From contig NW_019217912.1 of the NCBI RefSeq assembly GCF_002571385.2, positions 381,380 through 445,379 of the forward strand: a stretch of 64,000 nucleotides of DNA, given 5' to 3'. Below, piece by piece: positions 1 through 64,000 of the stretch. Positions within the stretch are counted from its first letter, which is position 1. The number at the start of each line of letters is the position of its first letter. Origin of the DNA: Stylophora pistillata (Eukaryota). The translations under genes and the position numbers were made by a program. Under the pieces are notes generated by a model that ran no database searches, was not told the origin of the DNA, and saw nothing but the letters and a program-made list of their open reading frames with translations.

Positions 1-2206
1 GGAAATATTACAGAGTGGAGACTAATTCAATATGTAATCATGTGAGTGACAAAATCGGACGACCGCGAAGCGAGAGCTCGATTTGTTGATTACGAGTTTG
101 ATTAAAAACCAGATTGGACGAAATCCTGTCACGAAATCCTACTGCCAATTAATCAAGACAATAACAGAAATATTGAGAAATGAACGAGCCATTATTTTTA
201 CGTTTTCATGAAAAACAACAGTTAAATCGGTAAAATGCGCGACAACAGTGCACGCACACGACGCGTAACCTGTCCCTTTAGTGCTCAAACTGGGCCGATC
301 ATAACAAATCACGTTGGAGTATTTTGTTATCGTTTTGATTATAACTTTTACTTAACAAAAAGGCGCGGTCAAATATACTGTAGAAATTCCACTAGTCTGT
401 GTAAGGTTTGGACTGAAAAGTTCCCTTCCCTTCCCACAGTGTTAGCGCCGCGGAGTTTCAAACTGAATAATTTAGAATCATATTGGTTCTTACCACACCG
501 GCCGTATTTATCGCTTTGATTTAGCTGATAACCACTGGATGTGCTTATAGCAGGCAATCGGACAATTTCAATCAGACAATTCGGTAGCAAATGACATATT
601 AGCCGGATATGCTGAAAGCCAATTAGTCTTACAATCTAGTCTATTCTACACAATCAAACGACTGTCAAGTATTCGATTGGGAAGTTTTTTTTTTTCCTTT
701 ATCGTGTGCCATATATTAGCTAACCTAGCTTTTAATCCTAACTGATCAGATTATCGTCACACGTTCAGCTAAACTCAATTTCTTTAAGCGTCTCATTATA
801 AATTTTGCTCCGCTAACTTCTATACAATAACATTTCAAATCATTCATATTACTTTCATTGGAATATTCCGCAGTAATGAATTATTTCCAGCGAAATTTTT
901 CTTCGCAGAGAGAGTCATTAAAAAATGATACGCTTATTTATTGCTGCCTGATTTGCGGGTGAGAATTCCCTATGCACCTCCAAAACTTTTACAGTTACAT
1001 CTCTTGGAGGTCCACTTATCCTGCGCAAATACTCCCGACCACCAATCATAATCGCGGCTACGTACCTGTTTTTACTTAAAACAAATCACAGTAAATCTGC
1101 AAAAGGTATCCAGGGGCTCTATTCAGCTATCACTCCTGGATTAGGAGCACATCAAACTATGAGTTTCCTTCGGCATGAGGCCAAACAAACGAAAACCGGG
1201 GTGGATCTCTATCGCGTGACCGTTCTTATCCACGAGCACAGAGGGATCTGCGCTGTTCTAGTGAAGTCAAATTGTGAGTCAAAAAACCCCCTTAGGTTAT
1301 TTTGTTGCATCGTTCTAGTTAAGGTTGAATAGCAATCTAGATAGTCAAGGCTCGCTTTTACTCCCACAACTTTTTCGGAATTCAACTATTCCGTCAGGAA
1401 TGGATATGTCTTTTATCGACTAATTAATAAGCTTACTTACGACGGAAACAAAAAGCAAGGCCCAGTTCACTCTGGTTCGGGAGTGAGCTTTACCGTCAAG
1501 AATAGGTAATATCTTTTACTGCCCAATTAAGCTTACTTTGATCTGCTCGTCTACCGACGGAAGACGCAGTGGGATATTCACAAGCTTCCTTTCTATTCTT
1601 GCAATATCACCACATAACCCCCTTAAATAGCACGGCGTAAAGACCAGTTTGACATTTTCATGTTAAAGGTGTTCTATGCCAAACACTATTTTTTTTTTCT
1701 CTCACGCATGATCATGTCAGGGCTAAAGAATTTTGGCGTCTGACAGAAAGGAAGTCAGATTTATAAATTAAATTTAACCTTTGCCAACGTGACGCACATT
1801 GCTCCAATTAGCCTCCACTGTTTAAGATTAATGAGACAAAACATCTAAAATCAAAACAAAAGAAAACAAACCTATTTTGGAATTTTGACATCTTAGAATA
1901 TTTATCGATAAGCAAGATTCTTTTGCGAAATAGACACTGACAATATTTCGTTTCGTGTGTCTTTTATTGTTAATCGTTTTACGTAAGAAACGTCAAAGGA
2001 ACTTAAATTAACATACAAACCTCTGCTTATTTCGCGTGCTTCCTATAAAAAGTTACATAACCCAGACTATTTAACATGTTAATTGGATGAGAAACAAAAA
2101 CACTAAGAGTTGTCTGTATCAACAGATGTTTCTGATGTGATGCAGTTCAATTGGATCTTGCATGCACACAGCTAACTACAGAAAGATCTCATTTACATTC
2201 AATAGC

Positions 2207-5200
2207 ATGGAGGATGAAGTCAACCGCGAAAGTAAGGAGAAGTTTACTGAAGGCAGTGGCTTTCTCGGAGGCATCAGGCCACTTCAGCTTCAACGAAGAA
2301 AGGCTCAAATTGTAGTGGGCTTTGTCCTCGTTGCTGTGGTGTTCTTCCTAATTGGTATCTTAATTGGATACTTAGTCACGAAGACATCGAATAGTGAAAG
2401 CTGTTCTCGTCAAGGTGCAGACAATGACGATAAGAGGACGGGTGATTTCCAAAAGTTCCATGATTTGTTTAAACAAACGATTAGGACCGAAAAGTTGGAA
2501 TCTCTGATGAGGTATGACAAACTGGTGATAATAGATCTCGCAAATGGTTTAAGCGAGTCTTCCCATAACGCCAAACGAGTGCAATGTTCCGATCTTGTGC
2601 ACCTCAAACATTTAATATTCGTGAATTTTTTCGTCATTTGCAACTCGTGTTAATCTTTTGCATCGACAACAATCATAACTACTTCTTGATACAATTTTGC
2701 CTCGTGTAGCGTTTATCATCTGAACAACTAACATTTTGTGATTTCCCTTCAGCACCCACTGGGGTGCACTTGTTCATTTTATCTGAACTGAAAACACGTT
2801 TTGGATAACGAGTCAAAATCTATCATCCCTTACTATCTTAACAGTCAATTGTATCTCGAAAAAAAATTTAAATCGGATTGTAACTGAAGTTTATCATCCA
2901 GGGGTGCCAAAATAATTTATAAATGTCTTCAAGTCCCACTTCAGTTTTTTTCCAATAGAATACGTGTTTCATTTGCATTAAGGCGAAAAACTAATTTCTT
3001 TTAAGCTGACAGCTGCAGCCGGCTAAAGACGTCACCAAGTTGATATTGTCTCATTTTGTTTAGTCTAGCATTCTTTCAAGTATGCGAGTAACGCGACAGA
3101 CGGTACAAACTAAGGGGAAGAAAGCAGTTCGCGTGACGTAAAATCATTCGAATTGAATATTTGATAAGGGTAAACGAAACTTTGGTTTGAAAGCAGCAAA
3201 GTGAAGGCCTTAAACTTTTTAAGAGTATGTTTAAGAGAGCACTAGGAAGTCGTGCCACATTCCTTCTCAACTATTTCAATGAAACTTTACCAGTTTTAAG
3301 GTTCTACCCTAAAGTTCAAAAAAGAAACAAGCTGATTTACGTCTTGGTTATTTCCTGAGGGAAACAGGTATATTGGGTTTTCACTAAGGATGTAGCTTCC
3401 ATATAGGCAAAATGTATGAATCTCCCACTACGACCGTATTTAACTTTTCACTACGAAAGTTTGCACACATATCAGTATATCACTGATGAAAGCTAGAAAA
3501 AGGTGTCAGTCATTTTGATTGACAGCTTTTTAATTAACTTGGACAAGTAAGTAAATGCAATTTTAGACTTTGAAACATTTGATAATTTTGAGGTCAAATA
3601 TCAGTTTTCCAGAAAGCTATAACACTAATTTAAAATAATTTCTCATCCATCATTTTGTCTCTGAAAAATATTGAAAATACTTTTAAGCACTGCTTTTTTT
3701 CGGCCTCAGAGGTCATTTGAAAACTGCACTTGTGACAAGCTTCTTTCAACTCCATCTATCATACAATTTTGGGTCATTAGCGGTGATTAAAGCAAATAAA
3801 CCTACATTTTCTAGCTATTCTTACTCAAACTTTCGAGTCTAAAAATGCAAGCCGTCCGTTTTCGCCAAATCTGTATCACGGTCTTCCCAGGCGCTCGGGG
3901 AAACTGAGTGCAAGAATCATGAGCCTTCCCAAGCTATTTAGTGGAAAACTAATAAATTAAAAACCAAGGAAGTGGTCCAGCTACCCCTAAGAATAACCTA
4001 AACAGAATCCAGTTTGAGTTTTTAAGTTTTATGGAGAACGCTTTCAACTGGTAAAGTTTCAGTGAGATCGGAGAGATGACATGCAGCTCGACTGCTCAGC
4101 GGTTGTCATGGACACACTCATTCATTTTTAAGTTTTAGGGAGAACCCTTTCAACTGGTAAAGTTTCAGTGAAATCGGAGAGATGACATGCAGCTCGACTG
4201 CGCAGCGGTTGTCATGGACACACTCATTCTGCCCCATTTAGCCTCTTTTGTTGTTTGCGGAAAGATTAAAATTGATATGACGATTTTTTCAAGTTTCACT
4301 TACTATGAAAAGTTACCAAGCAAAATTCCCATAAGGAACGATGATGCAGTTACACAAGCCATGTAGATGCAAATACACATATGTCACAGCAAGGGAGATT
4401 AAAAGTGTGCAAAAAGCCGCAGTTATCTTATAGAAATAGATGCAATAATCATGATAAACAGTTTAACTGAAAGCGATCAGTTACGATGACTGTGATGATG
4501 AATAATGAACAAATTTTGCGGTTTAATCAGAGTTTTCCGGCTTAACTCATTATTACAGGGAATTTTCAACACAGCCACACATCGCAGGATCTTCGAGACA
4601 GCATGAGCTTGCAAATACACTTGCCACAAATTGGAAATCATTTGGTTTCGACAAAGTAGAGAAACCCGAATACAATGTTCTCCTGTCTTTTCCACAACCA
4701 AACAAACCGAACAAGGTCGCTATAATAGAAAACGGTAAAACGATCTATGAAATAGCAGGAAAAATTAAGGTAAGTTAAGTTCGTTCTTTTTTCTTCTAAA
4801 ATTTCCAATTCAATTTCTGCACTTTCTTGACATGATAAAAGAATAGTTTGGTTTTTTCCAACTTTATGCAAGTGTCCCCCCCTTTTTTTAGCTCTTTTGG
4901 ATGGTTTCCATTTGGTGAATATTAGGAATTGTCAAAGTTTAAGCAGATAAGGCAACTAAAATTTTGGCCTAAACACTAGGGACACATTTTTATTACCGGA
5001 AGTATTTAGCAACTCCGTCCACTATCCACCATCAGTTATCCTTTTCCCTCCCCAATCCTTCCCTCCCCCGCCCCCCCCTTCCCATCGTGCGGTTATGGTG
5101 GCTCGTTTCTCTTATGATCCACAATTAAGTATCTTGTTTTTTGTGCACTTCCGATTAAACCTTTACACCGTAACACCTGTATGAATTTTCTCCACACTGT

Positions 5201-8200
5201 TCTCTATACATTTCCTAAGGTGCTGACACGGAGAATTTGCATAACAATTAAGAGCTACTTAAGTTGGTGATCATTTCCTCCATTCCCGTGACTTTAATGT
5301 GTGATTTAAGGGTGACATTGTGAGCAGTTGTTAGATATTAGTTACCTTTTGGGGCAAAGGGTTAATTCATTCAATCTTTCATTCATTCATTCATTCATTC
5401 ATTCATTCATTCATTCATTCATTCATTCATTCATTCATTCATTTATCCATTCATGAAGAATAAAGTTCTTAGTGCATGGTGACACATCTTTTATCTGGGC
5501 ATTTTGGCCGAGCAATATTTGTCTGCTAGTATCTGTGCTAGATTACTGCGACACAATGAATCTTCACGTCGTTATGCTTAATTTAGAGAGGTAATTAAAA
5601 ATTCCTTACGTCAGTAAAACATGTTGCCTTGATGCTTTCTAGATATCCCCTGATCCAACCAGCTCTGAGACATTCGATCATTATCCTTACCTAGCATATG
5701 CGCACAGTGGTACTGTTGAAGGTGATCTGGTCTATGTCAACTATGGGGGAGATACAGATTATGAAAAATTATCTGAAATGAATATTACTGCGCGAGGGAA
5801 AATTGTCATCATGCGATCCAGAAGTGTAAGTATCACAGAAAATCCTTTGATCTAACTTTGCCCATACTCGTTTCAGTATGTTTGTACATGACAATTGCAT
5901 CATGTTTTGCAAAAATTTTTTCTACTTTGGGAAAAACACTCTCTAAAAGGATCACTTGACGAATCTCTCTCTGATCATATAAATTGCGATGAATGGAGTT
6001 CAGGACTTTCAAGGAAGATATCTCCGTAGTTTGCAACTTTCGAAGGCTAATAAATTTCTAAGGAAACTTCTTTGACAATTTGATACGAACTGTGAAGCTT
6101 ATTAAAAAAGATTCATTTTCTAAAGAAACTGTTGCTCACCTACAAGAAAGTGAAGCTATTGTTTACCAAGGTGAAGTTGGTAAATAATCCACATCACTAA
6201 GAGATTTGAAAAGCGGATTAATGCCAACTCCTCGTTAAGGAAAATTCCTATAAATAGCTCTAAACATGTCAGGTTTTCAAATTCCAATTAGCGGCTCTTT
6301 CGCTCTTAACAAATTCACTTTAACGTTAATTTTTTTGCTTTTTTTTTTCTAGAGAACTTCTTTTGTAACGAGAGTAATCTGATATCAAGGTGAGTAACGT
6401 AAATGTTTTCATTCTTCAGGTTTCCAATGCTGAAAAACATGGAGCAATAGGAGCGCTGGTATTCCCAGACCCAAGCTTCTCTGCCCAGCAAGGATACGCT
6501 CAAGATCAAGTGTACCCTAATGGTTGGTGGTTACCGTCAGGGGGGGTGCAGGAGGGCACGATTTTATTTGGGCCGTACAATGGAGACCCCCAGACCCCAT
6601 TCCTTCCGTCTATCAAGGGTATACATCGCAAACCTGTCAACGAGAGTGAACTCCCAAAAATTCCAGCCCAGACAATATCTTATGGCGATGCCTTGGAGCT
6701 ACTGCGCAGATTAGGAGGTAACGTCGTTTTCTTTGGTCGAAGTCTGCGGAACCTTTTCAGAATCAGGGCACTAACTAGAGAGGAGTGTCATGTGCTGGGA
6801 TGAGCAAACGTTACTTTAAAAATGCGTTACATCGTATGATTAAGAATAAAACACGATCGTCACCTCATAAGTTGGAGTAGAAGTATCTCAGAGGAAAGTT
6901 ATATTGATTTACACTCTGCTCTCTTTAACTAAACGTATTCACAATTTTGCAGGATCAGAAGCTCCCGAGTCATGGCAAGGTGGTTTAAACATCACATACC
7001 GCACTGGGCCAGGGTTTCACAACAGCAATAAGGCAAAACTCAGGTTAGAGGTTAACAACAAACCGGAAAACAAGTCAATCTACAACGTGATAGGTACAAT
7101 TTTCGGAACGGAGGAGCCTGACCGATACGTCATCGTCGGTAACCATCGGGATTCGTGGTCCTTTGGCGCCGTTGATGCGTTAAGCGGAACCCCGGTAACG
7201 AATGAAATAGCTCGTGTATTTGGAACACTTTTGAAAAAGGGGTGGAGACCGCGACGAACCATCAAGATCTGTAGTTGGGGTGGAGAGGAGTTCAACTTGA
7301 TCGGATCACAGGAGTGGGTCGAGGAAAATGCTAACATCCTTGCTGAACGTGCTGTAGCGTATATCAATTTAGATATTGCCGTCTGCGGAGACTACGTTTT
7401 AAGAGCAAGAGCGACACCTTTGTTTAAGCAGATAATTCACAAGTGGGCCAAAGAGGTCAAGGATCCCAATAATACCAAAGGTGCAAACACGATTTACGAC
7501 ATTTGGTTGAAAAAGACTCCTTCCGATACCAATGGCAAAGAACCAATGATTTTTAACCTTTTTTCTGCAAGTGACTACGTACCCTTTTACCAGTACATAG
7601 GTGTGCCGTGTGGAGATTTTGGCTATTGGTTCGGTTACCCTAACAGGACATCTCTCTATCCTGTATATCACACACAACAAGACACATTCTACTGGATGAA
7701 AAAGTTCGTTGATCATAAATTTCAAATTCATAGAGCCATGACACAGTTTGGTGGAGGAATGACACTGGATTTCGCAGACCAACCTTTGCTACCATTTGAC
7801 GTTCAAAATTACGCGTTCGCATTAAACTTTTCATTCCATGTTGTCACTTCGTCCCCAGACCTCTCGGCCAATGGAATTACTCTTACTGCACTTCGAGACG
7901 CTGTGTCCGGGTTCATGGACGCTTGTCGGAAATTCGAGGGTAGAAAATCTGACCCTGCCTTGCTTCAAAAGCCCTACGAGTTGCGAGTGATGAATGATCA
8001 AATGGTGAAACTGGAGAAGGCCTTCATTTACCCTTACGGCCTGCCTGGTAAAGCACAGGACCGACATGTTGCTTTTAACTTCGGTTTTCACAATATCAGC
8101 CCATCAAAGGCGACATTTCCCGGTATCACAGAGGCTCTGTATATGGCTAAAAAAACAGGAGACTGGGATCTAGTTAAGCAACAAGTGTCAATAGCAACCT

Positions 8201-8250
8201 ACTGTGTTCAAAGCGCCACAAAAGTGCTGGAACCTTTAGCAGGTCGATAA
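2207..8250 (+). CDS. Glutamate carboxypeptidase II / NAALADase-like M28B peptidase, type II membrane protein, ~764 aa; exons 2207-2511, 4559-4769, 5643-5825, 6420-6717, 6953-8250
   Basis: N-terminal TM (IVVGFVLVAVVFFLIGILIGYLV); PHIAGS; PA-domain EGDLVYVNYG; GDPQTP; zinc/catalytic motifs GNHRDSW, GAVD, SWGGEEFNLIGSQEW, YINLD, YHT; C-terminal MNDQMVKLEKAFI..GLPG. GT-AG sites give a continuous frame of 2295 nt. Confidence 0.92.
4019..4229. repeat. Tandem duplication of ~106 bp in intron 1 of the peptidase gene
   Basis: Two near-identical copies of ttttaagtttta..ttcaactggtaaagtttcagtga..gtcatggacacactcattc. Confidence 0.9.
5156..5364. mobile_element. ~210-bp TTAA-bounded MITE-like repeat, copy 1 of 3
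   Basis: ttaaaccttt...aaagggttaa ends; related diverged copies at ~16442-16649 and ~23619-23833. Confidence 0.75.
5364..5445. repeat. (ATTC)n microsatellite
   Basis: Direct read. Confidence 0.97.
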
Positions 8251-23924: not shown

Positions 23925-26900
23925 TTATTTGTCTCGAGGTTTGGAAGATTTTTCTTTATTATTCTTTTTGTCTGGAACAGAAGATTTCTTCAAAGCAGCA
24001 AGACCAGGTTGCATGTTGAACTGGAAATAAAATGAATTAAAATGATGCACGTCACATAACAATAGTAAATACTGATGCATCTGATGTGATGGTCATTCAT
24101 AGGTGAGAAAAGTTTGATATCACGAAAGTGAACATCCCCAACTTTCACGCCGCAAAGCAGCCGGATAGAGAAGATAGATACATAGGAAATATCAGTTAAT
24201 CAACGTATAAATCGCAGCCAGAGACCGTATTGCGTTACACAATACGGGTACAAAAGCTATGACGTTGAATAAAAACTTTAAATGTGCTTAAAAAAGCTAT
24301 AAGGGTATGGTACTATCGATATACAGAAAAAATTATATAGGTTGATAGTTTCTAAAGAAACTGTTTGGGGCTGCGTCGGTGGGGGTAAAGATATATCATC
24401 AAAGTTGAAATGGTAAATTGGCCACCGTATCGATTACAAAAGCTGACGTTTCGAGCGTTAGCCCTTCGTCGGAGCGAATAGAGGAATTGTGGGTTGTGTG
24501 TACTTTAAAAGGCAGAAAATGGAACTACGTTATTGGTGGGAACATGGCAACGAGAAAAACACGAATAAATTAGTGGAATGAAAAGCGTTCCTTGATCCCT
24601 GTGGGATTTAGACTGCCGGTTTGAAAGATGAGCTTTTGTTCAAGAGTTTTACGGCTTTCCGTGCTACCTAAGTGTAAGGAAAGATAGCAGATTACCTTAT
24701 GTTGCTTAGAATGGTTAGGTAAATTAAAGTGTCTACCGACTGGTTTCGATGTGTCCTTGTCATTCTTTTCCACGTCGCGAAGGTGCTCTCGGAATCGGTC
24801 ACCTAGTCTAACCGATTCCGAGAACACTTTATGACTACTTAAAACAGAAACCATCAAGGATCCGAATAAAATCTTATAGAGAGATCCAGTGGCCATCTTT
24901 AAGTGTTTACCAGGAGGCTAACAAGAAAGCTAACTATTCCCAGCCCTGTAGGTTTTAAATTTGATATCGAAAGTTGTTGCATGGCTGAGAATGTACAGGG
25001 AGAACCTGTCTGAAAGGCTTCATCTTTGCACGTTGCTTTTTTACAAGTCTTTGCTTGCCAAGAATGTTATAAAAATCCGTTTCCAGTAGAAAGTTCTAGC
25101 TCGAGTTGACATAGGTTTACTAAGCTGTAATAAAGTTAAGGTATGCGCCTCTTTCTTACAGTACGCGACTCCATCATTTCTCCTCCAGGGACTTGGAAAA
25201 ATGATGCCATCTCCTTCTGGGGCACCATAGGAAGTTGCGATCCCTCAGATTCCGTTCCTTCTTGGGAAAACATGGCTGATGGTTGTGGCTCAGGAACACC
25301 AAAGCTAGAAGGATTAAAACCTGCAAATTGCTCTGTAGAACAAAAAAGATCCGCAGGTACGATCAAGGGGTTAAATAAGTCAAATATCTTTTCAATGAAT
25401 TTGAAACACTATCGGCTCAAAAATAAAATTGTGAGTCACAAGAACAAAAAATAGTAATACAAGTGATACTTATGATAATAGTAAGGACGATGATATTTAC
25501 AATAACAATGATAATGGCAACAATAATGATGATGATGATGTTAACGATAATAATGACACGGAAAACCGAATGAGGCGTGAATTTGTAAAGTGGTTACTTA
25601 TAATATTCTAAAATTGTCCCTGTTTGTAACTTGGTTGTGGTTTTGGCAGTAATTAACTGGCTGATTCTAAGTTACTTTAAATTTCTGCACAGATGTTTAA
25701 TAAAAATAAACTGAGTCAGTGACCTCAAACATGCAATAGTTTAACTTTGGTTCTTGTTCATTTGATCATTATTGTGTTATCTAGATTGCTGGAGTTGCAT
25801 GTCACTCTGATGTTTGCTTTCTAAAACATTAAAAGCAAAACTCGATCATTTTATATAAGTATAACAAGGGAAGGTGTGGACGACAGAGTCTTCAGTTAAA
25901 AAGAATATTTCAGTACCTCCGCTCATTTGCTGTGTTTCTGGTATCATGGGCTCTGGTCGTCTCTCTGGAAGTTGAGAAAGGCCTGTGCCAATCACAGAGA
26001 AAAACTAAATTAGCCTTAATTATTTGTGGTGTAACTCAGTTAAATAGCTCAAGTTGCTTTACCTTCCGCTTACAAGTTTCTCTAAAACTTTTCCGTTTAT
26101 GCGAGAGTTGAGAGGTAACAAATCTTAACGATCATACGCGTGGTTAGTCATCAAAGAGGGATAGATATGTAAGACGTACTATAGCTTTACACCAGCTTTA
26201 GATACCAATGCTGGCAATAAGCAATATACTCAAAAACTTGAACCAATTTCCACTTGCTAAAACATAACAAAATATCTCAACCAAATGATAAAAATAAAAA
26301 ATCTTAGTTTTTAAGATACTGGTAACGGTATACATTTGATTGACGTCTTGTCACCCATACCTGGCATTTCTGACATTTGTTCTCTCATTAAAGCACTTGG
26401 CATTTCTGACACGGGCTCTCTCATTGAAGAGCTTGGAGTCCAGGGACCGTTTGGTGTACCACTGAAAAAATTTGCACTCTGAAATCGAGGTACCTTGAAG
26501 AAAGGGTTATTTTGGGGTGATGGGAAACCGCTGAAGGGTGATAATGGAATTGGCATACGATCCGTCTGTAAGCCGGCCATTCTCAATGCCGAAAGTCCGG
26601 TAGGAGCCATCCTGGAACGAAGAGCTGGCATCATGGATGACTTAAAACTCAATTGTTGTTGAGGCTGTGCAAATGGCAATGACGGAAAAGCAGCACCTGA
26701 AAACGGTGATTCCGGTAAACCGAACGATGGTAAACCTCCAGAGGAAAGCGCTTGAGGCATAGCCGCCAAAAATTGTCGTTTTGTGGTTTTATCCTTCTTC
26801 TTCGAAGACTTTTTTGATGGTGATCGTTTCTTCCTTGAAGCCATCCCTGTCAAGAGATGAAAACTTCGAATCGGTTCATCAATAAAGTTCTTAGTCTCTT

Positions 26901-29900
26901 CCCATTCAACTCTTGGTGTCTACCCTTCGGCTAGACATTCACTGAGTCCGTTGGCTTATTATGTCATGATCAAACGAAGACGATTCTGTTCTGGTAACTT
27001 GGTGTTGAATATAACCATCCATATGTATTTAACTTACCTACTATTCCCATTCCAGGCTGTGCAGCAATTGGAATGCTGATACCAGTAACACTTGACAGTT
27101 GTCGAGAAAAGGCCATTTGAGATGGCGTCAAAGAAGAGCGCATCTGAGGAACTCTAGGGGCTGGGAAACCCGATGGAGACATTCCTATAGCAGGTGATGA
27201 CATTGCAGGAAGGCCAGAGCGACTCATGGCCCTGATGTCGAACGGTTGTGATGGTTGTAAAGACGGAAACATCCTGAGGAATGAGGTACTAAAAATTAAT
27301 ACTAGGAAGACTGTTTTCCTTTCCAAAGAGGTACTTTGAATAACATAATGATTCAAGGAACTTTTTGAAGCTGCATTTAATTGTTATCTGTGATAAACTG
27401 TAAGTTCTTCAGATATTGCACCAACTATTCCAAAGAGCTTTTGAAGAAAGGGATAGAAAGTTTCACGTAAAAGTAATAATTCATTAACAACCAGTATCAT
27501 TCAGTAACTCTTCTTCAGTAAACGATAAATATCAAAAGTCTCTGATATATGCAGGCGGTTCATCAAAATAAGCTGTAAGCTTCATTTACACTGAATTTAT
27601 TTGTACAACCACCAAAGACCTCTTTCGAAATTCTGGTTTTTACATGTTCGAACTCTGATTTGTAAGCTTACAGGTATTTGTCTACAAAATTATAGCACAT
27701 GAAAAATCATGACAGAAGTATGTCACATTTTAGCCTGTACCTTTCGTTTGTGTCAAAATGAATTTTTTAAATTCTTTTAAACATTAATGAATCATTAAAT
27801 CATTAGATGACTGATGTATGTATCGAATGTTTCATTGGCTGATTGACTGTATGACTGAGAGATGACCGATGAGTTTTTGTGATTGGTAATTTCCTAATTC
27901 TTGATTCTAGCTCACAAAGGGTGTCAAAATCGACCGACAGGTTTGGTTTAAGGCGTGAGATAAAGTAACTTACCTTGCTCCTGTGAGGCCTGGCTGCGCA
28001 TTGGATGCTGGGTATCTATAATGAAAGGGTCGAAGTCAGGAACAATTCAAAACTGATGAAATACTTTTGATTCAAATAATGGTGCAGCTTGAAGATAACG
28101 TCATTTGAATGCATCTGTGGCTATCGATAGTTCGTAAGTTTTTTTAACATTAGAAGACCTCAATCATACAAACTGTACTCCGCGCCTTCGCAGACACATT
28201 CATTTTCTGATGCAAAAACTCGGCCAAATTCAAATTGGTCATTTTTAATTTATATCTTCGTCTATGCTGAGCGATTTGTGATATGACAAAAAAAAAAGCC
28301 AACATGGAGTAAATAAATGTAGTTTTTCATATCAAGTGTTCTGAAGCATACAGTTTCACTGCCACGGTACACTGAAGTACACTTATTTCGTAACTTATGT
28401 CACAAGTGGCCAATCGTTGTTTCAACTTTATCTAAGGCCTATCTCATTCAATTGGGAAATATTTAATGCAGAATGCTATCTTGCATCATTGTTTAATAAT
28501 GCTATCATTGTATTGATCAGTTCAATTTGCACCAGTCTTTGACTCAAAAAAAGCACACGTTCACTGCGAGAATGGAAGGACGCATATAGTCTATTAGCTC
28601 GGCGTAGGGGAAGGTAGCTGCTTGACTTTTATGGGCATTCAGGACAAGTAAGCCGTACGGAATGGCAGGTTGATTATAGGAGTAATGAGAAGTGCAAGTT
28701 TACTTGGCTATTTATAGACTTTGTAAAGGTTTTCGACTCAGAACGGCATGCGACATTCCTTTTCTCGCAATGAACATAATGGGTCAAAAGGTATTGCTAA
28801 TTATTTAACATTATGTCGTCCGAATTTTTCAAGCGTGCCGAACACATGCCTTTAATCGAAAACTTTTACGTGGTGCTCTTTAGAAAAATATCAGACTTAA
28901 AGGCATTTCAAAAGTATTTAATTTTGCTACAAAATTACATGAACGTGAATCATGCAACAAACTCCTGACGACTCATAAAAAATTGTATCTTGGTTTACTT
29001 TACTATTGGGTTATGTATTGGCAACATTTCCTCAACTGCTTATCTGTCATTTGCTTCTTTTTCGACGACACAGTTCATTGGATTCGTCATCAAATTGAGA
29101 ACTACTTATATGTAATTTTAGTTGAGGACCTAAGAGGTTGGAATCCCATTGGTCGGCTCATGACTGGAGATATGAACGGCGATATCTGCCTTTTCATCAC
29201 TTTCTTCCCATGAGATGATTGGTGACGTCTGCTCTTAGATTTTAACTTTGTCGAGAACTCTCCAACCAATTGTTTCAGCTTCCCTCTTTTCTAAAAGTAA
29301 AGGCGCAAAAGAATAGTGATCTTCAACTTTGAAACTCACATACATTTTTCTTTACTGAGATATAGAAAAGTTTTGACAAAGGTAGAATTAGCTATCAAAA
29401 ATTCATTGTTTTGTGGTCCTTTAGCTTTATCTTGCTCAAAAATGATTCGCAATCATCGCATTACTGGCTCAGATGTAGATACTGAATAAATGGCAAGCAA
29501 ATCAGACTACTGTATCATATACGAATGCTACAGCTTACCACTTTCTCGGGACTGGAAGCGACATGCTCACGCGTCGTGTGGACATCGACATTAACATTAG
29601 GTGCTCCAACATGGATGGAGTGAGAGGGACGATCGCGGAATGGTAATTCTTGTGCTTGTGGAATAAGACCAGCATGGGCCGCGGGATAAAGCGACGCATA
29701 AGTACTGGCCAATGGATATGTGGAAGGGTAAGCCATTACGTGTTGGGGCTAAATATGAAATATACATATAGAAAACGAGCCATGTCTTAATGCTAGCATA
29801 CTCAGTAAGAGGAGCAGCAGATTTTTTCCATAGTCCCGAAGGCCCATGGAGCATATGTGGAAAGTATTCAAATATATAACTTATAAGTTAAGGTCTTTCA

Positions 29901-32900
29901 TAAAGTGTACTCTACTTTTTTTAACGCATTGTTTTAATTCAGCAGCTATACGAAAGAAATCCTATAGAAAAATTATTGCTGTCGCCTGCTATGAGGCCAA
30001 AGATCAAAATTTATGAACTATAAAGAAGTGAAAGAGTCCATAATGGGATTTTAATGAATGAGAAAAAAAAATGGTTATGTTCATGGGGTGATTTATCACA
30101 CATCCTTCATGAATTAATCAAACATTGACTGTGAGGATTTAAAGAAAGTAATAATAAGTCATAAAAGGCGTGTCTTACATAATTAAGTGGGGTGTAATGG
30201 TAGTATGGATTGACTCCATGAGCCATCATGTATCCTGGGTAGAGGTAGTGGAATGGATATGCCACAGCCTGCTTCTTGATTAGCTCTTTCGCCATCTCAC
30301 CAGGAATATCGGCTCTTCTAGAGGCTGCTTCTGTGGTTTGCTCCTCCGCTTCGGCAGGATACATGTTTGGATTTCCTTAATGAAGCATAATTCAAAAAGT
30401 TTTCAGAAGGAAGTTAATCTTCACTGTCATTCTCAAAATGTGTATCACGTAACCACAGTCGCACTATTCTTCTTATGCTAGCTCACCTGTTTCTCCAAAG
30501 GCTTCCATGGGTGATTCGCCCTCATTTGATGGACTCGCGCTGAAAGTAGACATCAAATCTTCGGACGGTTGCTGTTGGCCTTCCTGTGGCTGCCCCATGC
30601 TGCCCATTGCAGCTGCTCTGAGGGCATTTGCTCCTTCGTCAGGACTCATACCAGCCAAACTTTCAGTTGTCTCCGCTGGTTCGGGTGACGAGTGTTCTCC
30701 ATTAGCTTCCATTTCCTGATCATTAAAACCTTGGACTCCTGGGCTATTTGATAATCCCATAGGTGTTTGAAGTTTCTCAATTCCTGGAAATCCCATAGCC
30801 AAGCTCTGCATTTCTGAGTTTAGCAGGTCGGCGCCCTCCAGATGAGGACGTGTTCGTGGATCTTCTTTACTATCGCTACTCTCCTCCTCTCCTGGATTTT
30901 CTATTTCTTGTCTAGACTTTCCTTTTTCTTCTTTTAGAGCCTGCTTCTTGGGAGTTTTTGATCGTGTCCAGCATGGGCAGCCACAGCCACAGTGACGGAA
31001 ATGACATGGAAGAGGCCAGGTCCACCCACCAATATAACCACAACCGGGATGTACACATCCCCCCCATCCACAGCAGCCTGGATTGTAGTTTATCACTTGC
31101 CTACTCTGAGAATTTTCATCCAAAGAGCCAGGAATGCCTGATCTATAGTAAGGACCAAATGCCCCATGAGGAGGACCATACGGTCCGTAAAAGCCTGCAC
31201 CATACAGGCCATACGAATGAGCACCTAACAAAGGAAAGGCGGCCTGGTAACCGTGACCTGGGTACAGTGCTCCTCCCCATCCCATTCGACCTGGATGAAA
31301 ATTATTTACAAAGTGTCTGCCAGTGGCTTTCTCTTCCTTTTTTAGTTCTTTTTCTATTTTTTTAGATTTTCCATTTGGAATATTTGACTTAAAAAACCCA
31401 TGGTCTCCAGGGAAGCCATATCCTAAGGCCGGAGTCGGGCCAAACCCGTAAAATGGTGTTAAATCCCCATATAGTGCAAAAGGATAAGGAATGTACTGAC
31501 TATGACCAAAAAAGGGATATTCGTAATCCGTAAATGGTCCATAGCCTGACCAGGAAAAGTCAATCCCTGCAAATGGTTCATGTATGAATTCTCGCTTTGG
31601 GCTCTTCTTTTCTTTATCGTCTGTACTAGGAACTTCTGAGCGAAAAGCAAGACCGTGTCTAATTCCTAGACCATACCCATACCCATGACCCCAGAAGCCG
31701 CCTAATGGTCCCCATCCTGGGTAACCACCGTTTCCCGGTCCCCAACCTCCCCAACCACCCATGTAGCCAGGCCACCAACGTTTTTCTGCTTTATCTTTCT
31801 TGCTTTGCTTTCCGGGGATCTCTGCTCTCAGAAGAGGATGATAGCTTTGGCCAGAACCCAACATGCCCCATCCATGACCGAAACCTCCAAAATCATAGCC
31901 ACGCCCCCAGTCGCCTAAAGCACCCCAGCCCGGATATCCTTCATTTCCTAATCCCCATCCACCCCAACCTGCCATGTATCCCGGCCACCATCTCTTGTTA
32001 GCTTCAGTGTGTTTCACGGAGGATCTGGTTTGTCCTTCTGATGATTTCTCAGAGATGTTGGAACGGTAGTATCCCTGGCCCCAGGGAATAGGTGTGGGCG
32101 TAAATGGCACTGCAGCAAACCCTAAAGACGGATAAGCATAACCATAAGCTGGAAAGGCAAATGTCGGTAGCATGCGACGATTTAAGAGTGCTTTTTGCGC
32201 TGGCTTTTTAGGACTTTTTTTGGAAATGTGAGACTTGTGCCATCCTCCAAGTGACGGATACCCAGTCCATCCTGCATGACGGGATGGATGTCCTCCCCAG
32301 TGAAATCCCGGCCACTGTGAGACAGTACCCCAAGGGTGGCCATGGTGGTAGGGCCCGAGGTGGTAAGCATCTATTACTTGCTTTTTCTTTCCCTTGTTTT
32401 CTTTGTGGTCTTTTGAAACCAATAAGGGAAATAAAGGCATGGGTTAATTATCAATTAATCATAGTAATTACTTATAATATAACCAACTTTCCCCTCGAAT
32501 GCCGTCAGTTCACTGATTGGATTTAATAAGTGAATTGATGAAATGTACTAAATATCACTATTTCCTCGGAGTAGGCCGCCTAAGCATATCGTTAAGTGAC
32601 ATTCTCTCAGAGAGCCTCGAGACTGATCCAGTAATACGAGAAACCACTGAACCAATTAATCCAACCTGACTTCTTTAAAACAGCCACCCTTTCATGTCAA
32701 CATGATTTTACATCGTGCGACACTTCAAACTGGTGGCATTTATGTTAATTTTTTCCATGGATATTCCTCTTGCTTGTATGATTGTCTTCAGCTTGTCAAA
32801 GATACTTCCAAAATAAAAGAAATTGGGTTTATGTTTGTTTTAAATCTGGTACCCCTGTCCTTTACAAGAAGGTCGGGTGATCCGTCGCTTTTTTTTTAGT

Positions 32901-33546
32901 GCTACATTGCCCATAGCTAAGTTTACGAATGCAACTGTTTTACCACAAGAGGTTCACAACATCGCTTACGGCTATGATCTTTTAAGGCTGAAAAATGGAT
33001 TAAACCATTTAAGTTTGAAGTAGCTTGAAAGCTAGTAATATCTATTGCTCAATGGAAACATTGTCTTCAATCATAGAAAGGAACGTGCTGATATTAATTA
33101 AGCTGAGATGCACCAAATGAAATCTGGAATGAAATTTAAAAAAATGCCTTTAGAGATCAAAGCAATAATCCATCATTGTTATTATTGTTATTATTTAGTC
33201 TTAGAATGAAAATATTTAATCTCAAATGGTATAAATTACTGCAAAAGACGCTCCTCTTTGTCACCCTGATATACGTGAGAATAACAAACAATTTTTAACT
33301 TAAATTACGGAACGAGAAACATATTTTCATATTGCACTGCGCAATATACAATCCTATACTTGTCGTACCTTTGCCTTGCCCTCCACTGTTTGCCTTTGAT
33401 CTTTTCAACAGATCGCTTTCTTCAAATTTTTTTTGATTTTCTACTGTGGCCGTATCTTCCAAAATGTTTGGTCTTCCTCTAATTCCACCGATGTAAACGC
33501 AAAGGAATGCAATAAACAACAGCACTTTCGACGCCAAGGCTGTCAT
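23925..33546 (-). CDS. Large secreted modular polyprotein precursor (~1260 aa), Gly/Tyr/Trp/Pro/His-rich then Met/Pro/Ser-rich; exons 33546-33369, 32409-30487, 30375-30179, 29748-29539, 29290-~29106, 28015-27974, 27273-27038, 26846-26361, 25982-25917, 25332-25160, 24020-23925
   Basis: Signal peptide MTALASKVLLFIAFLCVYIGGIRG; the 655-aa ORF and the smaller minus-strand ORFs join with compatible intron phases at GT-AG sites. The exon 5 donor is uncertain (29106 or 29130, both phase 2). Last exon FNMQPGLAALKKSSVPDKKNNKEKSSKPRDK*. Confidence 0.75.
24310..24812 (-). mobile_element. Penelope-like element 3' fragment: GIY-YIG C-terminus plus terminal repeat with hammerhead motif (24442-24475)
   Basis: RLGDRFREHLRDVEKNDKDTSKPVGRHFNLPNHS..STESRKTLEQKLIFQTGSLNPTGIKERFSF; shares ~180 bp with 8671-8848. 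Confidence 0.85.
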
Positions 33547-35018
33547 TATGATCGCAAACTTCCCCTAGAGGCTTCCAATTTGAAATTGAAGGCCACGATG
33601 AAGAAGCTTCTTCAAACACTCTCGATTTCAGGACTTTCTTGGTGAGCGTAGAATATCCAATAAGTTTACCAATTTAACGTGGCAATAGGCCTCGTTGGTT
33701 CAATAAAAAATTAGCGCCTCGGCTATTGGTTGGTTTTCCACCAGCGCAGGTCCACTGCAAAACTTGACTTGTTAACTAAGAGAATTTTTGATCTGTTTTG
33801 AATAAATTATTAATTCGTTATGGCTACTGTCAAAATAACTATTAGCGGTTCTTTTGTTGAAAGGAAAACAACTATGGCGGATGAATTATTTTGTCTCAGA
33901 CCGTTTCGTATTCAACAACAATTAAATTTTAAAGTAGTTTTAAGGTTTCCTCAACTGCTTCATCTACCAATATGGTGGGTTTTCAAACAAGTGTGGATCA
34001 GGTTAGATAAGTCTGACTCTTTTATTAGGGCAAATTTTGAAATAAATGATTAACACAATTAGTCTGAGGGTTCTGAAGAATAGAAATGAAAGGATAATTG
34101 AACTAAAACTTTATACTTTGACACTTAATAGCTTGTGGAGTTTGCATAGTAATTCAAAAAATCACTCTGGACTGTTATAACTTCACAGTGATCAATTTAT
34201 ATAGCAATTTTACCATTCTCTCCTGGTTTATGGACATTAGCCTGAGTAACCTCTTTAATAAGGTCATTATCGCCAATTTATAACTCACCCAACCAGTACG
34301 TAGAGCTTCTTTCTTGCTCTTTTGAAGCGTATCGGAAATATTGGTCATTTTATTGTGAGAAGAGCCGTATTCTTAAAAAAGCCTGGCAAACTTAGCTGAT
34401 AGTTAGCAGAGGGGATGGTTAGCTTAAAGATCGACTTTAGGGGCTATTTACTATTCAAAGAAATTAATTCCCATTTGCCGAAACTTCGGGAAAATTATGT
34501 TCCAGTGTAGTTTAGAAGAGATCCAATAGCTATCTTTCATACAATACCTCATTCAATGAAACGGGTCGGTACTGTGAACAGCTTAAAGCTGTTTGTACAG
34601 GGTATTCTTTCATTAAACATACAAACAAAAGAAAACTGACTTTTTCTACGGGCAAACTTATTAGAGTTAACGAATATTTAATCTCTGAAATAACAAAAAG
34701 AAAAAAACAAAACAGAGGTAGGAGTTATTTGAGTTTTACGATCGGCTAACCCTGTAGAACACGATTTCTACACAAATTTATACAGTACCACCAACAAAAG
34801 AGTTTTTGTTTAGGACGATATCGGAAACATTAGCAATCTTTTAATTCTGATACTAACAGGTCTAAAATCGAGCAATTGATAGGGCTCTGCAGGTGCCATT
34901 TCACGCCATTTGAACAAATTTTACAATGACATAACATTACGTGCTTTACGTAATCGCAAATAGACAAAAAAATTGCCGAAACAAAATATTTTTCACTTTA
35001 AGACAGAAGAAAGTAAAC

Positions 35019-36855
35019 ATGAAACTTTTGCTACTAATTACTGTTTTATTATCCCTGTTAGACTTGACACCGGGCAAGCCATTCAAAGAACGCGAAGGCG
35101 AAGGTAGTTTCATTTCCGACAATAAATCCAACGTTGACGATGAGTTGGAGACATCTGTCGTAGATGGCGATGACGAAGACGAAGAAGACGGAAGTACCAC
35201 TGAAGACCCAAGAATGAGGCAGAAGAGAAGTGATAATACGGAGCTCGAAAATGACGAAAGAAGTGGTGATTTCAGTGGAGATGACTTAGAAACTGAAGAA
35301 AAAGAAGGACAGACTAGCAAAGAAGACAAATCCTTGCTAAAAAGTGACCGTCCAAAGGGTAAAAGCGAGACAGACCTGCAGATGCAAAATACATTGGGAA
35401 TCCAACAACCTTTCACTATCACTGCAATGCAACCAGGAAAGCCTCAGGACCCATCTCAGAATGTGAAAACTCCCGAGCCGTTTTCTTTGAATTTCGCCGG
35501 TCCTGCTGGGAAAATAGAGATAACCCCATTTGAGCCTGCCATCAACAGAATGAATAAAGTCAGAAGGCGATGTATGTGTCCATTACCTTGTGGACCAGCG
35601 CACGCATATGAAGTGATTGGCTGCAGCGGACCTTACAGCATTCCTTGTGGTGGATGCATTGGTGGTGGTTGGCCCGGTCTTGGATGTGGAGGCTTCGGCG
35701 GTTACGGTGGCCCTGGTGGTTTTTATGACATGATACCTCATCCAGGATGGGGTGGCTACCCCTTATACGGTGGATATGGATTTGGGTGTGGAGGGTGTGG
35801 GGGCTGCGGTGGTTGCGGTGGTTGCAATGGATGTGGCTGGGGAGGAGGAGGCTGTGGACATCCACCAATCGTGATGTGCTGTAAGTGCTGCTTTTAATTT
35901 TTTAAGAAATGATCGATGATAGATAAGAATAAATAACTTGATTAAGAGTTAAATGATACCGAGGCATGAAGACGGTAATAAGAAGTTTCATTCATGACAA
36001 AATGGCTAAAGGAAACATGTGATGTTCACCATGAAACACTTGTTTCAACATAAAAACAAAAACAACAAGAAAAGTAAAAGAAACAAACAAACGAGACCAT
36101 AACGACCATAAGGGGAAAGAATCCAGAAAACTGTCAAATTCTTTTCTTATACGGTACAGAGAGATATCCTTTACGTAGGTAGAGAGAACCATAATTATGG
36201 TGGTTAACAACTTTTAATTACTTTACGCGACGTTACTTTAAACACAAAAACTATCTCCGCGCTACCTCATTTTTCTACTCAGTTCTAGATTTAGTATACA
36301 GCAAAGTATAGCAACATAAAAACGCAAACGAATCCGCGGGTCTTTCACTCAGGGGGCTTCTCTTGGGAGAGTCTTGTAACTGGAGGGTGGTACTTTTTTT
36401 TTTAATCGGTTGGGAGTGTACGATCAGAGAATTTTGCTTCAAAAACTTTTCAGTCTAGCTCTAACAATATTGGGACAATAATTCAAAAAACGACAGCGGA
36501 AATTTCGATCTTAAGTTTTATATTTCGCACAGTGTATAATTGATAGTGCAGTAGCTAGCCGACAACACAAAATAATACCATTCAATACACTCCTTTTGGC
36601 TTCTCTCAGCCACTTCTATTTTGCCAAAGTAAAAAGCTAACGAGGGCTTTTCTAACGAAGTCAACAAATGGATGGGGGGAAGACTTATGACAGGTGTTTT
36701 TGCCACTTCAAGCCTTTAATTTTTTACTATCATCAGGTTGTAAAAAGAATGGTAAAGAGGGGGAAGGGGAACAACCCAAACCTCAAAGAGACAACCGCAA
36801 TGTCTTTCCAGCCAAGCCACGTCATGTCAGAAAGGAGAAGCCCGGCCGTCCATGA
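35019..36855 (+). CDS. Secreted precursor (~326 aa): acidic propeptide plus Gly/Cys-rich mature region with (GCG)n; exons 35019-35880, 36737-36855
   Basis: Signal MKLLLLITVLLSLLDLTPG; D/E-rich pro region with RQKR; RRR-CMCPLPCG...GCGGCGGCGGCGGCNGC; donor T|GTAAGT at 35881 and acceptor CATCAG|GT give MCCCKKNGKEGEGEQPKP...GRP*. Confidence 0.8.
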
Positions 36856-62583: not shown

Positions 62584-64000
62584 ATGCATGTGAAGCTAGT
62601 AACCGTTTTATGCCTCGTATTCGTCTCTTTGGCCTTAGTGGAAGGAAAGTCTATTAACAAGGAGAATGGTGAGGATGACTATATTTACATTTTGATGTTG
62701 TCATTGTTGATGAGAAGTAACGATTACATTTTGGAATTTTCAGTTGAGAATTCAGGGAAAAATCTAAAAGGAGAACAAAATAATATCATGGTAGAGCTGC
62801 AATCCGCAAATGAAAAGAGCGACTCTGGAGAAGGTAAGCGATTCGGTCAAGCTACGCGGTACACTCTTCAAAGAATCAAGACTGGCTGTGTTCTCTCGTA
62901 AAGGGTTTAGTGATACCGACGATAAAAGTCTTTTTCAACATTGCACCTTAGATAGATCATTACATCACATTTTTGTAGTATTCCACATGACCAAGACACT
63001 TTTACATAACTGGACCGTGTTGCAAAAGGCCCACACTGATGAAACAATCTTTCATTTCTCAGCTTTCTTTGTTCCTCCGTTTGAATTCTTTAACTATCTG
63101 ATTTAGTCTAAAACTCTTAGATACACAAAGAGAAGATATAGACTTCCAGAAGCTATAATTGTTCTTAGGATAAAACTTGGCCGAACCGTTTAATTTTGGA
63201 GAAATTAAGAAAGCATGCTTCTTTGCAAAGTCTCGGGTCGCTCAAAACTGACGATGATCTAAGAAAACAAATATGGAAACATACTAAACTTTGATGAATT
63301 GAAAGTTCACTCAGACACAACCAGCTGTGGTATAAAACGTTTTTTCTGGTTTTGAATGCAGACCTTCTCTTTTCGCACTTCATCCCCTAGAATCAAGTTT
63401 GTTTTGTGTTATAGAGTCTTTACTAGCCAGGCGGTTTGCGTCTACCCCCTTTGACTCATCGCTCTATCCGACAAAGTTGAAATAACTTTCAAAACGATCG
63501 TACTTGATGAAGGGTAAAGGATTGATTTGACTTATTTTCTGGTCATGCAGAGCAAAAAGTAAAGGATCCTTGTGTATGCAGAGGAAAACCTAAAAAGAAA
63601 TGTACTGAGGAGACGAAGAAATCAAAATGCCCTGAAAAATGTAGCAGTTTGTGCGCCGAAAATAAGGAATGTGAACACAAAGACCAACCCAAGAAATGTG
63701 AGCAAAAAGATCAACCCAAAAAATGTGAGCAAAAAGATCAACCCAAAAAATGTGACTGTAAGTCACAAGCAGAAAAATGCAAAAGTGTTGCCGCATCTGA
63801 AGGTGAGAAGAAATGTAAATGCAAGGGAGGAGAAGCCAAGGCAGGAATTCCAAGACCAGCACCCCACGCCGTAGGAGGCGCCATAATACCATTGTCTTCC
63901 ATATCGCCTCAGCTTGGTATCGGCAAAAAAGTCAATTCCTCAAAGAAGTGCTGCTGCGGTGATTGTTGTCACGATTGTTGCTGCGATTGCTGCCATGACT
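62584..64000 (+). CDS. Secreted Cys/Lys-rich protein, runs off window end; exons 62584-62668, 62744-62833, 63551->64000
   Basis: Signal MHVKLVTVLCLVFVSLALVEG. Exon 3 is open in a frame not in the ORF track: EQKVKDPCVCRGKPKKKC...(CEQKDQPKK)x3...SKKCCCGDCCHDCCCDCCHD. Confidence 0.72.

Follow-up and report, generated by a model that had tools for sequence, protein, structure and literature searches.

A conserved two-sided boundary grammar in a secreted, modular protein of stony corals and its tentative reading as a polyprotein

The 64,000-nucleotide stretch of the Stylophora pistillata genome analyzed here (contig NW_019217912.1, positions 381,380 to 445,379; called the window below, with coordinates counted from its first letter) carries on its minus strand an 11-exon gene whose second exon (30487..32409) encodes a succession of dissimilar aromatic peptides set between recurring boundary signals. 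As read from the predicted protein, the repeated unit is [basic pair, or R before Gln]-[uncharged aromatic/Gly/Pro core, each different]-[aromatic/hydrophobic][R/K][S/A]-x-[I/V]-P-[Lys/Glu spacer of 10-30 residues], and sequence comparison indicates that this two-sided grammar is conserved from corals to a sea anemone. The protein family is real, anciently conserved, undescribed and cnidarian. We tentatively propose, with confidence just short of even, that the protein is a polyprotein, cut at KR/RR pairs and at a second site, phi-[RK]-[SA]-x-[IV]-P (phi being an aromatic or hydrophobic residue), to yield cores that would assemble into a material. Judged on the sequence, this is plausible but unproven, and an uncut block-copolymer matrix protein is a serious rival.

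Exon 2 lies within a 655-residue open reading frame (ORF; 30473-32440, minus strand), which contains the stretch 30487-32409 and reads as the preliminary description had it: seven Gly/Pro/Trp/Tyr/Phe/His-rich cores, each opening after a basic site, closed by the motif and followed by a Lys/Glu-rich spacer. The basic sites are KKK-QVID, RR-MLPT, KR-WWPG (twice), KR-EFIH, GR-HFVN and SR-QVIN, with KR or RR ahead of cores 2-5 and KKK, GR and SR ahead of cores 1, 6 and 7. All modules are on the minus strand. Core 1 (32237..32380; QVIDAYHLGPYHHGHPWG...GGWH after KKK; pairwise identity 0.83) is closed by KSHIS (32222..32236, ORF residue 69), which takes the form [KR]S[HRQ]I[SPA] in orthologues. Core 2 (32066..32173; MLPTFAFPAYGYAYPSLGF...GYY after RR) ends at RSNIS (32051..32065, residue 126), RSKVP in most orthologues. 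Core 3 (31829..31990; WWPGYMAGWGGWGLGNEGYPGWG... after KR), with its almost invariant block KRWWPGYMGGWGGWGxGNxGYPGWG, runs into RAEIP (31814..31828, residue 205). Core 4 (31643..31777), the second WWPGYMGGWGGWG module and likewise preceded by KR, is closed by RSEVP (31628..31642, residue 267), the least conserved copy, to which 10 of 16 aligned sequences conform. The last three copies are almost invariant. Core 5 (31391..31591; EFIHEPFAG...GFF after KR) is followed by KSNIP (31376..31390, residue 351; matched by 15 of 16 sequences, with S and I invariant), and core 6 (31145..31315; HFVNNFHPGRMGWGG...PYY after GR) by RSGIP (31130..31144, residue 433; 16 of 16, S and P invariant). Core 7, a nine-Cys module (30965..31099; QVINYNPGCCGWGGC...CPCWT after SR; pairwise identity 0.80), leads to RSKTP (30950..30964, residue 493). 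This seventh copy was originally counted with the others; its R, S and P are indeed invariant, but in orthologues it is really R-S-x-x-P, the fourth position being free (A/Y/F/S/T/V, not I/V).

Cores and spacers differ sharply in composition. The cores span 36-67 residues, with 22-36% F/W/Y/H, 11-42% Gly and no more than one basic residue each; to call them nearly uncharged slightly overstates the case, since core 5 has seven acidic residues and core 3 has three. The spacers (10-20 residues, 30-67% charged) lack aromatics save one His in spacer 2 and end in KR, RR, GR or SR. Immediately before the motif R/K stands an aromatic or hydrophobic residue in nearly all aligned sequences. The ORF has six matches to the strict pattern [RK][SA]x[IV][PS], where 20,000 shuffles of the same protein averaged 0.056 and did not exceed 3, and the whole protein of the 11-exon model contains ten motif copies. 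The recurrence of the motif downstream is borne out in the inferred gene model by RADIP (exon 3), RSGLP (exon 7) and KSSVP (exon 11). Only a Lys-rich tail follows KSSVP, so that core, motif and charged tail behave as a single unit. As had also been claimed, the cores are mostly non-identical: only cores 3 and 4 (z = 12.4) and cores 6 and 7 (z = 8.0) resemble one another, all other pairs scoring z < 2.5, and the motif is therefore not the passenger of a recent duplication. In spacer 2 (32020-32034, minus strand) we also noted a near-invariant TRSSVK, an R-S-x-V without Pro whose R, S, S and V are kept in at least 90% of sequences and which may be what remains of a former boundary between modules.

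A search with exon 2 returned 15 stony-coral orthologues of 50-84% identity, the closest (84%) from a Tara marine metagenome scaffold; those of named source are the hypothetical protein P5673_001874 of Acropora cervicornis and, reached via cluster members, an unnamed protein of Porites lobata. The queries for homology searches were exon 2 and database proteins, the joined 11-exon protein being used for frame checks and motif counts. In the alignment of 16 coral sequences the modules occur in identical order, one to one. Mean pairwise identity by residue class is highest for the basic pair before each core (0.86), followed by the motif R/K (0.81), S (0.80) and P (0.76), the cores (0.71), the motif I/V (0.60), the acidic tail that follows module 7 (0.58), the spacers (0.53) and the variable motif position x (0.41). 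The preliminary description had staked its proposal on the motif being better conserved than the neighboring spacers, and in this alignment it is, with its R/K, S and P at 0.76-0.81.

A second search extended the family to a 992-residue hypothetical protein of the sea anemone Actinostola (P0017). This protein lacks two of the modules, and whole modules are missing or changed, while the boundaries GFY-KSKIP...HKR-WWPG, GYL-RSGIP...SKR-WWPG, GNY-RSSIP...GR-AFVDGYHPG, C-RSKTP and ASR-RANIP are kept. Distant fragments (P0018, P0019, P0016 and P0027) similarly keep Y/F/L/H-[RK]S-x-[IV]P ... KR-core with different adjacent sequence. Among the homologues spacer length varies and the KR end stays.

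At the third motif the corals alternate between RAEIP and RSEVP or RSDVP, a Ser/Ala swap at one orthologous site. The second motif position thus needs a small residue rather than a hydroxyl, which argues for a steric fit, for example to the P1' pocket of a protease. Phosphorylation or O-glycosylation of the motif Ser is unlikely, given that Ala substitutes at orthologous sites. A further look-alike is the EB1-binding SxIP motif, [ST]-x-[IL]-P within basic stretches of cytoplasmic proteins; we reject this reading because the protein is secreted, its signal peptide being conserved, and Val often stands for Ile/Leu and Ala for Ser.

The signal peptide, MTALASKVLLFIAFLCVYIGG, is encoded in the coding part of exon 1 (33369..33546, minus strand; ATG at 33546), and directly after it comes a short, acidic pro-region ending in LLKR (within 33369..33546, minus strand). 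It is the sole hydrophobic segment of the protein, with no other window resembling a transmembrane segment, and is kept in Acropora, Porites and Actinostola. By this predicted signal peptide, the gene product enters the secretory pathway. AlphaFold2, run on the 16-sequence alignment, gives a mean predicted local distance difference test (pLDDT) score of 29 and no secondary structure beyond one short helix in the acidic tail. We read the protein from this model as intrinsically disordered; such a result would be expected of a precursor or of a disordered material.

In the polyprotein reading, a convertase of the furin/Kex2 type would cut after KR/RR, and each core would come free carrying a charged C-terminal tail made up of its motif and spacer. 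The element phi-[RK]-[SA]-x-[IV]-P would then act as a second recognition site, where a trypsin-like protease whose S2 pocket is hydrophobic would separate [RK] from the small residue; alternatively, the motif might serve as a trimming stop. This second step would remove the spacer from the core. At least seven and as many as about 10-12 distinct cores would be set free; aromatic, sticky and of low solubility, they would form a material rather than act as hormones, and the charged spacers would keep the precursor soluble in transit. Poor solubility follows from the uncharged character of the cores and their 22-36% aromatic content, which suit them better to assemble than to signal. We infer every cleavage step, the enzymes and the material role from a pattern that is what one expects of a polyprotein: boundary residues are best kept, modules come and go as whole units, spacer length drifts with the KR end fixed, and the last motif stands before a charged tail only. 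The interchange of Ser and Ala at one orthologous site also fits a requirement for a small P1' residue.

Several observations weigh against this reading. The second site is monobasic, with an aromatic P2 and no basic residue at P4 or P6, and is not a classical convertase site; monobasic convertase sites usually carry an upstream basic residue, and neither Site-1-protease rules nor the classical convertase rules for monobasic sites fit the residue pattern of the motif. The grammar is not uniform, motif 4 being weak and motif 1 usually ending in Ser, not Pro. An excess of Gln following basic residues would have suggested pyroglutamate N-termini, but the 10 cases observed do not differ significantly from the 6.4 expected (P about 0.1). 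Bulk materials are not usually conserved as strictly, position by position, as these cores are. The release of more than ten peptides, their self-assembly and their bioactivity, all put forward at the outset, are deductions from sequence. Finally, codon alignments with three orthologous loci (L004-L006) yield a ratio of nonsynonymous to synonymous substitution rates (dN/dS) of 0.10-0.25 over the whole exon, with pooled values of 0.13 for the cores, 0.14 for the tail, 0.19 for the motif and 0.23 for the spacers; both spacers and acidic tail are thus under purifying selection. By these values the spacers are freer than the cores but not neutral, and they do not drift freely. They also hold the near-invariant blocks TRSSVK and KEEKGKSRQEI. 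Together, the dN/dS value and the invariant blocks suggest that the spacers are more than throw-away linkers, which fits a protein that also works uncut.

The strongest rival builds on these same data. In it, the product is a matrix, adhesive or cnidocyst protein active at full length and built, like coacervating adhesives of marine animals and the proteins of hard tissues, from sticky aromatic/Gly blocks in alternation with charged Lys/Glu ones. The motif would serve as a conserved hinge, as a peptide that binds a partner or as a site of cross-linking, and the KR pairs would belong to the charged block. We regard this as a real possibility, if on balance a doubtful one. Purifying selection on the whole protein, spacers and tail included, speaks for it, as do the strict one-to-one module order across corals, the disorder throughout the AlphaFold model, and the long, disordered Pro/Ser/Met/Gln-rich C-terminal half (exons 3-11), which carries few motifs. 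The gene also sits in a cluster of secreted Gly/Cys/aromatic-rich genes, the nearest in a head-to-head pairing that is syntenic in a distant genome, which suggests components of one material. Yet charge alone does not require the basic pair before the cores to be so much better conserved (0.86) than the rest of the charged spacer (0.53). Nor does an uncut protein readily account for the survival of motif and KR in distant homologues whose surroundings have been replaced, and the Ser/Ala interchange rules out a cross-link or modification based on Ser.

The boundary grammar is also compatible with a precursor of bioactive peptides, in which Gly/His/aromatic-rich antimicrobial or signaling peptides would be freed at the same sites. 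Glycine-rich antimicrobial peptides of aquatic invertebrates are reportedly covered by a review (PMC11767717), and each core here is distinct and strongly conserved position by position, which is more typical of ligands than of bulk materials. We nevertheless consider such a precursor improbable. The cores are long, nearly uncharged and very hydrophobic and aromatic; most antimicrobial peptides are cationic. No core ends in a Gly-basic amidation signal: each closes on an aromatic or hydrophobic residue plus R/K, never on Gly-[KR][KR], and so falls outside the definition of an amidated cnidarian neuropeptide. A Pfam family match is also lacking. That the motif is a functionless, chance by-product of a low-complexity ORF is scarcely credible, for all the compositional bias of the protein and the old duplications behind modules 3/4 and 6/7, when six copies stand against 0.056 expected in composition-preserving shuffles, the motif is kept position by position in 16 corals and a sea anemone, the exon evolves at the low dN/dS given above, and the transcript is spliced and expressed.

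Among known systems, neuropeptide and prohormone precursors, including those of cnidarians, share with the coral protein a signal peptide, several peptide units, dibasic KR/RR sites and charged spacers; measured by rules from general knowledge, they differ in the length of their peptides (4-30 residues, against 36-67 here) and in that the coral cores are uncharged, aromatic and mutually different. For the second site the release of bradykinin from kininogen by kallikrein offers an analogy from general knowledge: Phe-Arg-Ser is cut between Arg and Ser, a monobasic site whose P2 is bulky and hydrophobic and whose P1' is small. A cut between [RK] and [SA] after phi would share these local features and so resemble kallikrein-type sites more than convertase sites; the kallikrein/kininogen system, however, belongs to vertebrate plasma and has no Pro at P4', no repeated grammar and no homology to the coral protein.

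For the architecture as a whole, the closest documented analogue is Rep1 of Ustilago maydis, whose 11 cleavage products assemble into amyloid fibrils and which is a structural rather than a hormonal polyprotein (PMC3133707). Rep1 and the fungal KEX2-processed repeat proteins (KEPs; PMC6339444, PMC7329392) resemble the coral protein as secreted pre-pro-proteins with many peptide cores flanked by KR sites, and by analogy Rep1 provides a precedent for polyproteins with a structural role. The proteins are unrelated in sequence and come from different kingdoms. KEP cores are near-identical repeats, whereas the coral cores are mostly unrelated to one another, and the phi-[RK][SA]x[IV]P motif at the C-terminal side of the coral cores has no counterpart in KEPs. 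Cleavage of Rep1 has been demonstrated; that of the coral protein is a proposal. Within Cnidaria, Hydra spinalin and the Gly/His-rich cnidocyst proteins, compared by description, are likewise secreted and rich in Gly, His and aromatics; spinalin is a component of spines and barbs, and knock-down of a spinalin-like protein in Nematostella disorganizes the barbs (bioRxiv 10.1101/2021.09.09.459669). Spinalin differs in being small and is not described as multi-module.

The gene runs from the ATG at 33546 to a stop at 23925, encodes about 1,255 residues and is single copy in its own genome, an assembly of 397.6 Mb and 5,513 contigs. Public polyA RNA-seq assemblies labeled as coral contain the stretch; their contigs, which come from four runs in three studies, lie on the minus strand and show GT..AG joints at 33369/32409, 30487/30375, 30179/29748, 29539/29290 and 29130/28015 and none within exon 2; a loose contig end continues at 27273. 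The borders proposed earlier for exon 2, 32409 and 30487, coincide exactly with these joints, and both are seen in the four runs. All features that follow are on the minus strand. Upstream of the ATG, a 5' untranslated region extends up to at least 33742, and the coding part of exon 1 is joined to exon 2 by the first of the joints listed. Exon 2, after its seven cores with their motifs and spacers, concludes with the spacer KEEKGKSRQEI and an acidic Ser/Glu/Gln-rich tail (30488..30949), which holds the only predicted helix and a conserved island, DPRTRPHLEGADLLNSEMQSLAMGFPGIEKLQTPMG. Exon 3 (30179..30375, bounded by RNA joints) carries RRADIP at 30316-30302, then KK-QAVAYPFHYLYPGY. Exon 4 (29539..29748, RNA joints) holds a second island, SHSIHVGAPNVNVDVHTTREHVA, kept as far as the sea anemone, and exon 5 (29130..29290, RNA joints) is Lys/Arg-rich with KR-QISPF. 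For exon 6 (27974..28015) an RNA joint marks 28015, and exon 7 (27038..27273; RSGLP at 27221-27207) takes its start from the loose contig end. Exons 8-11 were placed by tblastn with a 1,266-residue orthologue (P0042, from a Logan assembly of a public run) and a search for in-frame GT/AG borders; their borders and the exon 7 donor are assigned in this way rather than from RNA contigs. They comprise exon 8 (26361..26846), rich in Pro/Ser/Phe/Met/Gln, exon 9 (25917..25982), exon 10 (25160..25332) and the coding part of exon 11 (23925..24020), with KSSVP at 23987-23973, the Lys-rich C-terminus and the stop codon.

The RNA contigs include two variants. In two contigs, from runs X10 and X14, exon 1 continues at 32421 in place of 32409, which adds 12 bases, or four codons in frame (32410-32421, minus strand); the variant intron ends are non-canonical (GT..AT on the coding strand) and could represent an alternative acceptor, an allele or an assembly quirk. 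A contig of run X1 is unspliced at the exon 5 donor, 29130, and reads through to 28515 (28515-29290, minus strand), either as a retained intron or as an alternative 3' end, which would truncate the protein after exon 5. The islands SHSIHVGAPNVNVDVHTTREHVA (exon 4, 29539-29748) and DPRTRPHLEGADLLNSEMQSLAMGFPGIEKLQTPMG (30488-30949) are non-repetitive and kept from corals to the sea anemone or to L001, a locus on a separate contig discussed below; they look like specific interaction sites in an otherwise disordered protein.

Sequence comparison places the family in both major clades of stony corals, complex and robust, and in at least one sea anemone. Searching 1.84 billion representatives with a profile gave 12 matches, all within the family. 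Neither this search nor those with the 919-residue coral and 992-residue anemone queries, which saw proteins of 0.55-1.75 times the query length and scored the 8,000 best word-sharing candidates, brought up a relative from another named anemone (Nematostella, Exaiptasia and Actinia gave none), and the absence from other annotated anemones may reflect loss or missing annotation. A skeleton-specific role is unlikely, since the gene is present in Actinostola, which has no skeleton. Pfam, applied to the ORF and four neighboring pieces, gave no match (best E = 0.38, 11 bits against a cut-off of 28.3 bits), the ESM Atlas offered no usable match, and a literature search found no paper on the protein, the orthologue accessions or the peptide strings.

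The window contains a run of further genes, each encoding a signal peptide, an acidic pro-region, KR/RR and one Gly/Cys/aromatic (Trp/Pro-rich) block; they seem to follow the same plan with a single module. The motif itself is not a shared signal of the cluster, since of six matches to [RK][SA]x[IV]P in all open frames of the window, five fall in this gene. The sole outside match is KAGIP at 63838 (plus strand), just after CKCKGGEA in an open frame near the end of the window. The head-to-head neighbor (34941-35897, plus strand) encodes a secreted Gly/Cys-rich prepro-protein of the form ...KVRRR-CMCPLPCGP...EVIG..GPY. Its homologue at L001:6824-7765 (minus strand; BLASTP E 5e-14), on an unrelated, GC-richer contig, also stands head-to-head with a distant homologue of the gene described here, so the pairing is old, a case of conserved microsynteny. 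Further Cys/Gly-rich ORFs lie beside the pair at L001. In Actinostola P0017 the nine-Cys module 7 is expanded, at residues ~420-520, to about 100 residues of (Cys-Gly-Gly)n that resemble the C-terminal GCGGCGGCGGC run of the coral neighbor gene (35700-35890, plus strand), which hints that the neighbor genes and module 7 share an origin.

A broader proposal joins these strands, and we think it unlikely as a whole: that a cut between [RK] and [SA] of phi-[RK]-[SA]-x-[IV]-P is an undescribed processing signal of stony corals and at least one sea anemone, yielding with the KR sites some ten different self-assembling aromatic peptides, and that the gene, its head-to-head neighbor and the clustered Gly/Cys-rich prepro-protein genes are a parts list of an undescribed extracellular or cnidocyst material. 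Were the cleavage code true, it would supply a new monobasic recognition motif for animal secretory processing, the first animal counterpart of fungal structural polyproteins such as Rep1, and a defined set of conserved aromatic Gly-rich peptides as candidates for coacervation, fibrils, adhesion or antimicrobial action. Even if the protein is uncut, this is a deeply conserved orphan family with neither a Pfam domain nor any literature found, and its conserved head-to-head pairing with a secreted low-complexity gene is an entry point into an unknown cnidarian secretory product.

Toward the start of the window, three plus-strand ORFs within 2162-8250 (2162-2653, 6390-6803 and 6904-8250) resemble, by eye, exons of a type II membrane peptidase of the transferrin-receptor/glutamate carboxypeptidase II kind, and mark the edge of the cluster of secreted-protein genes.

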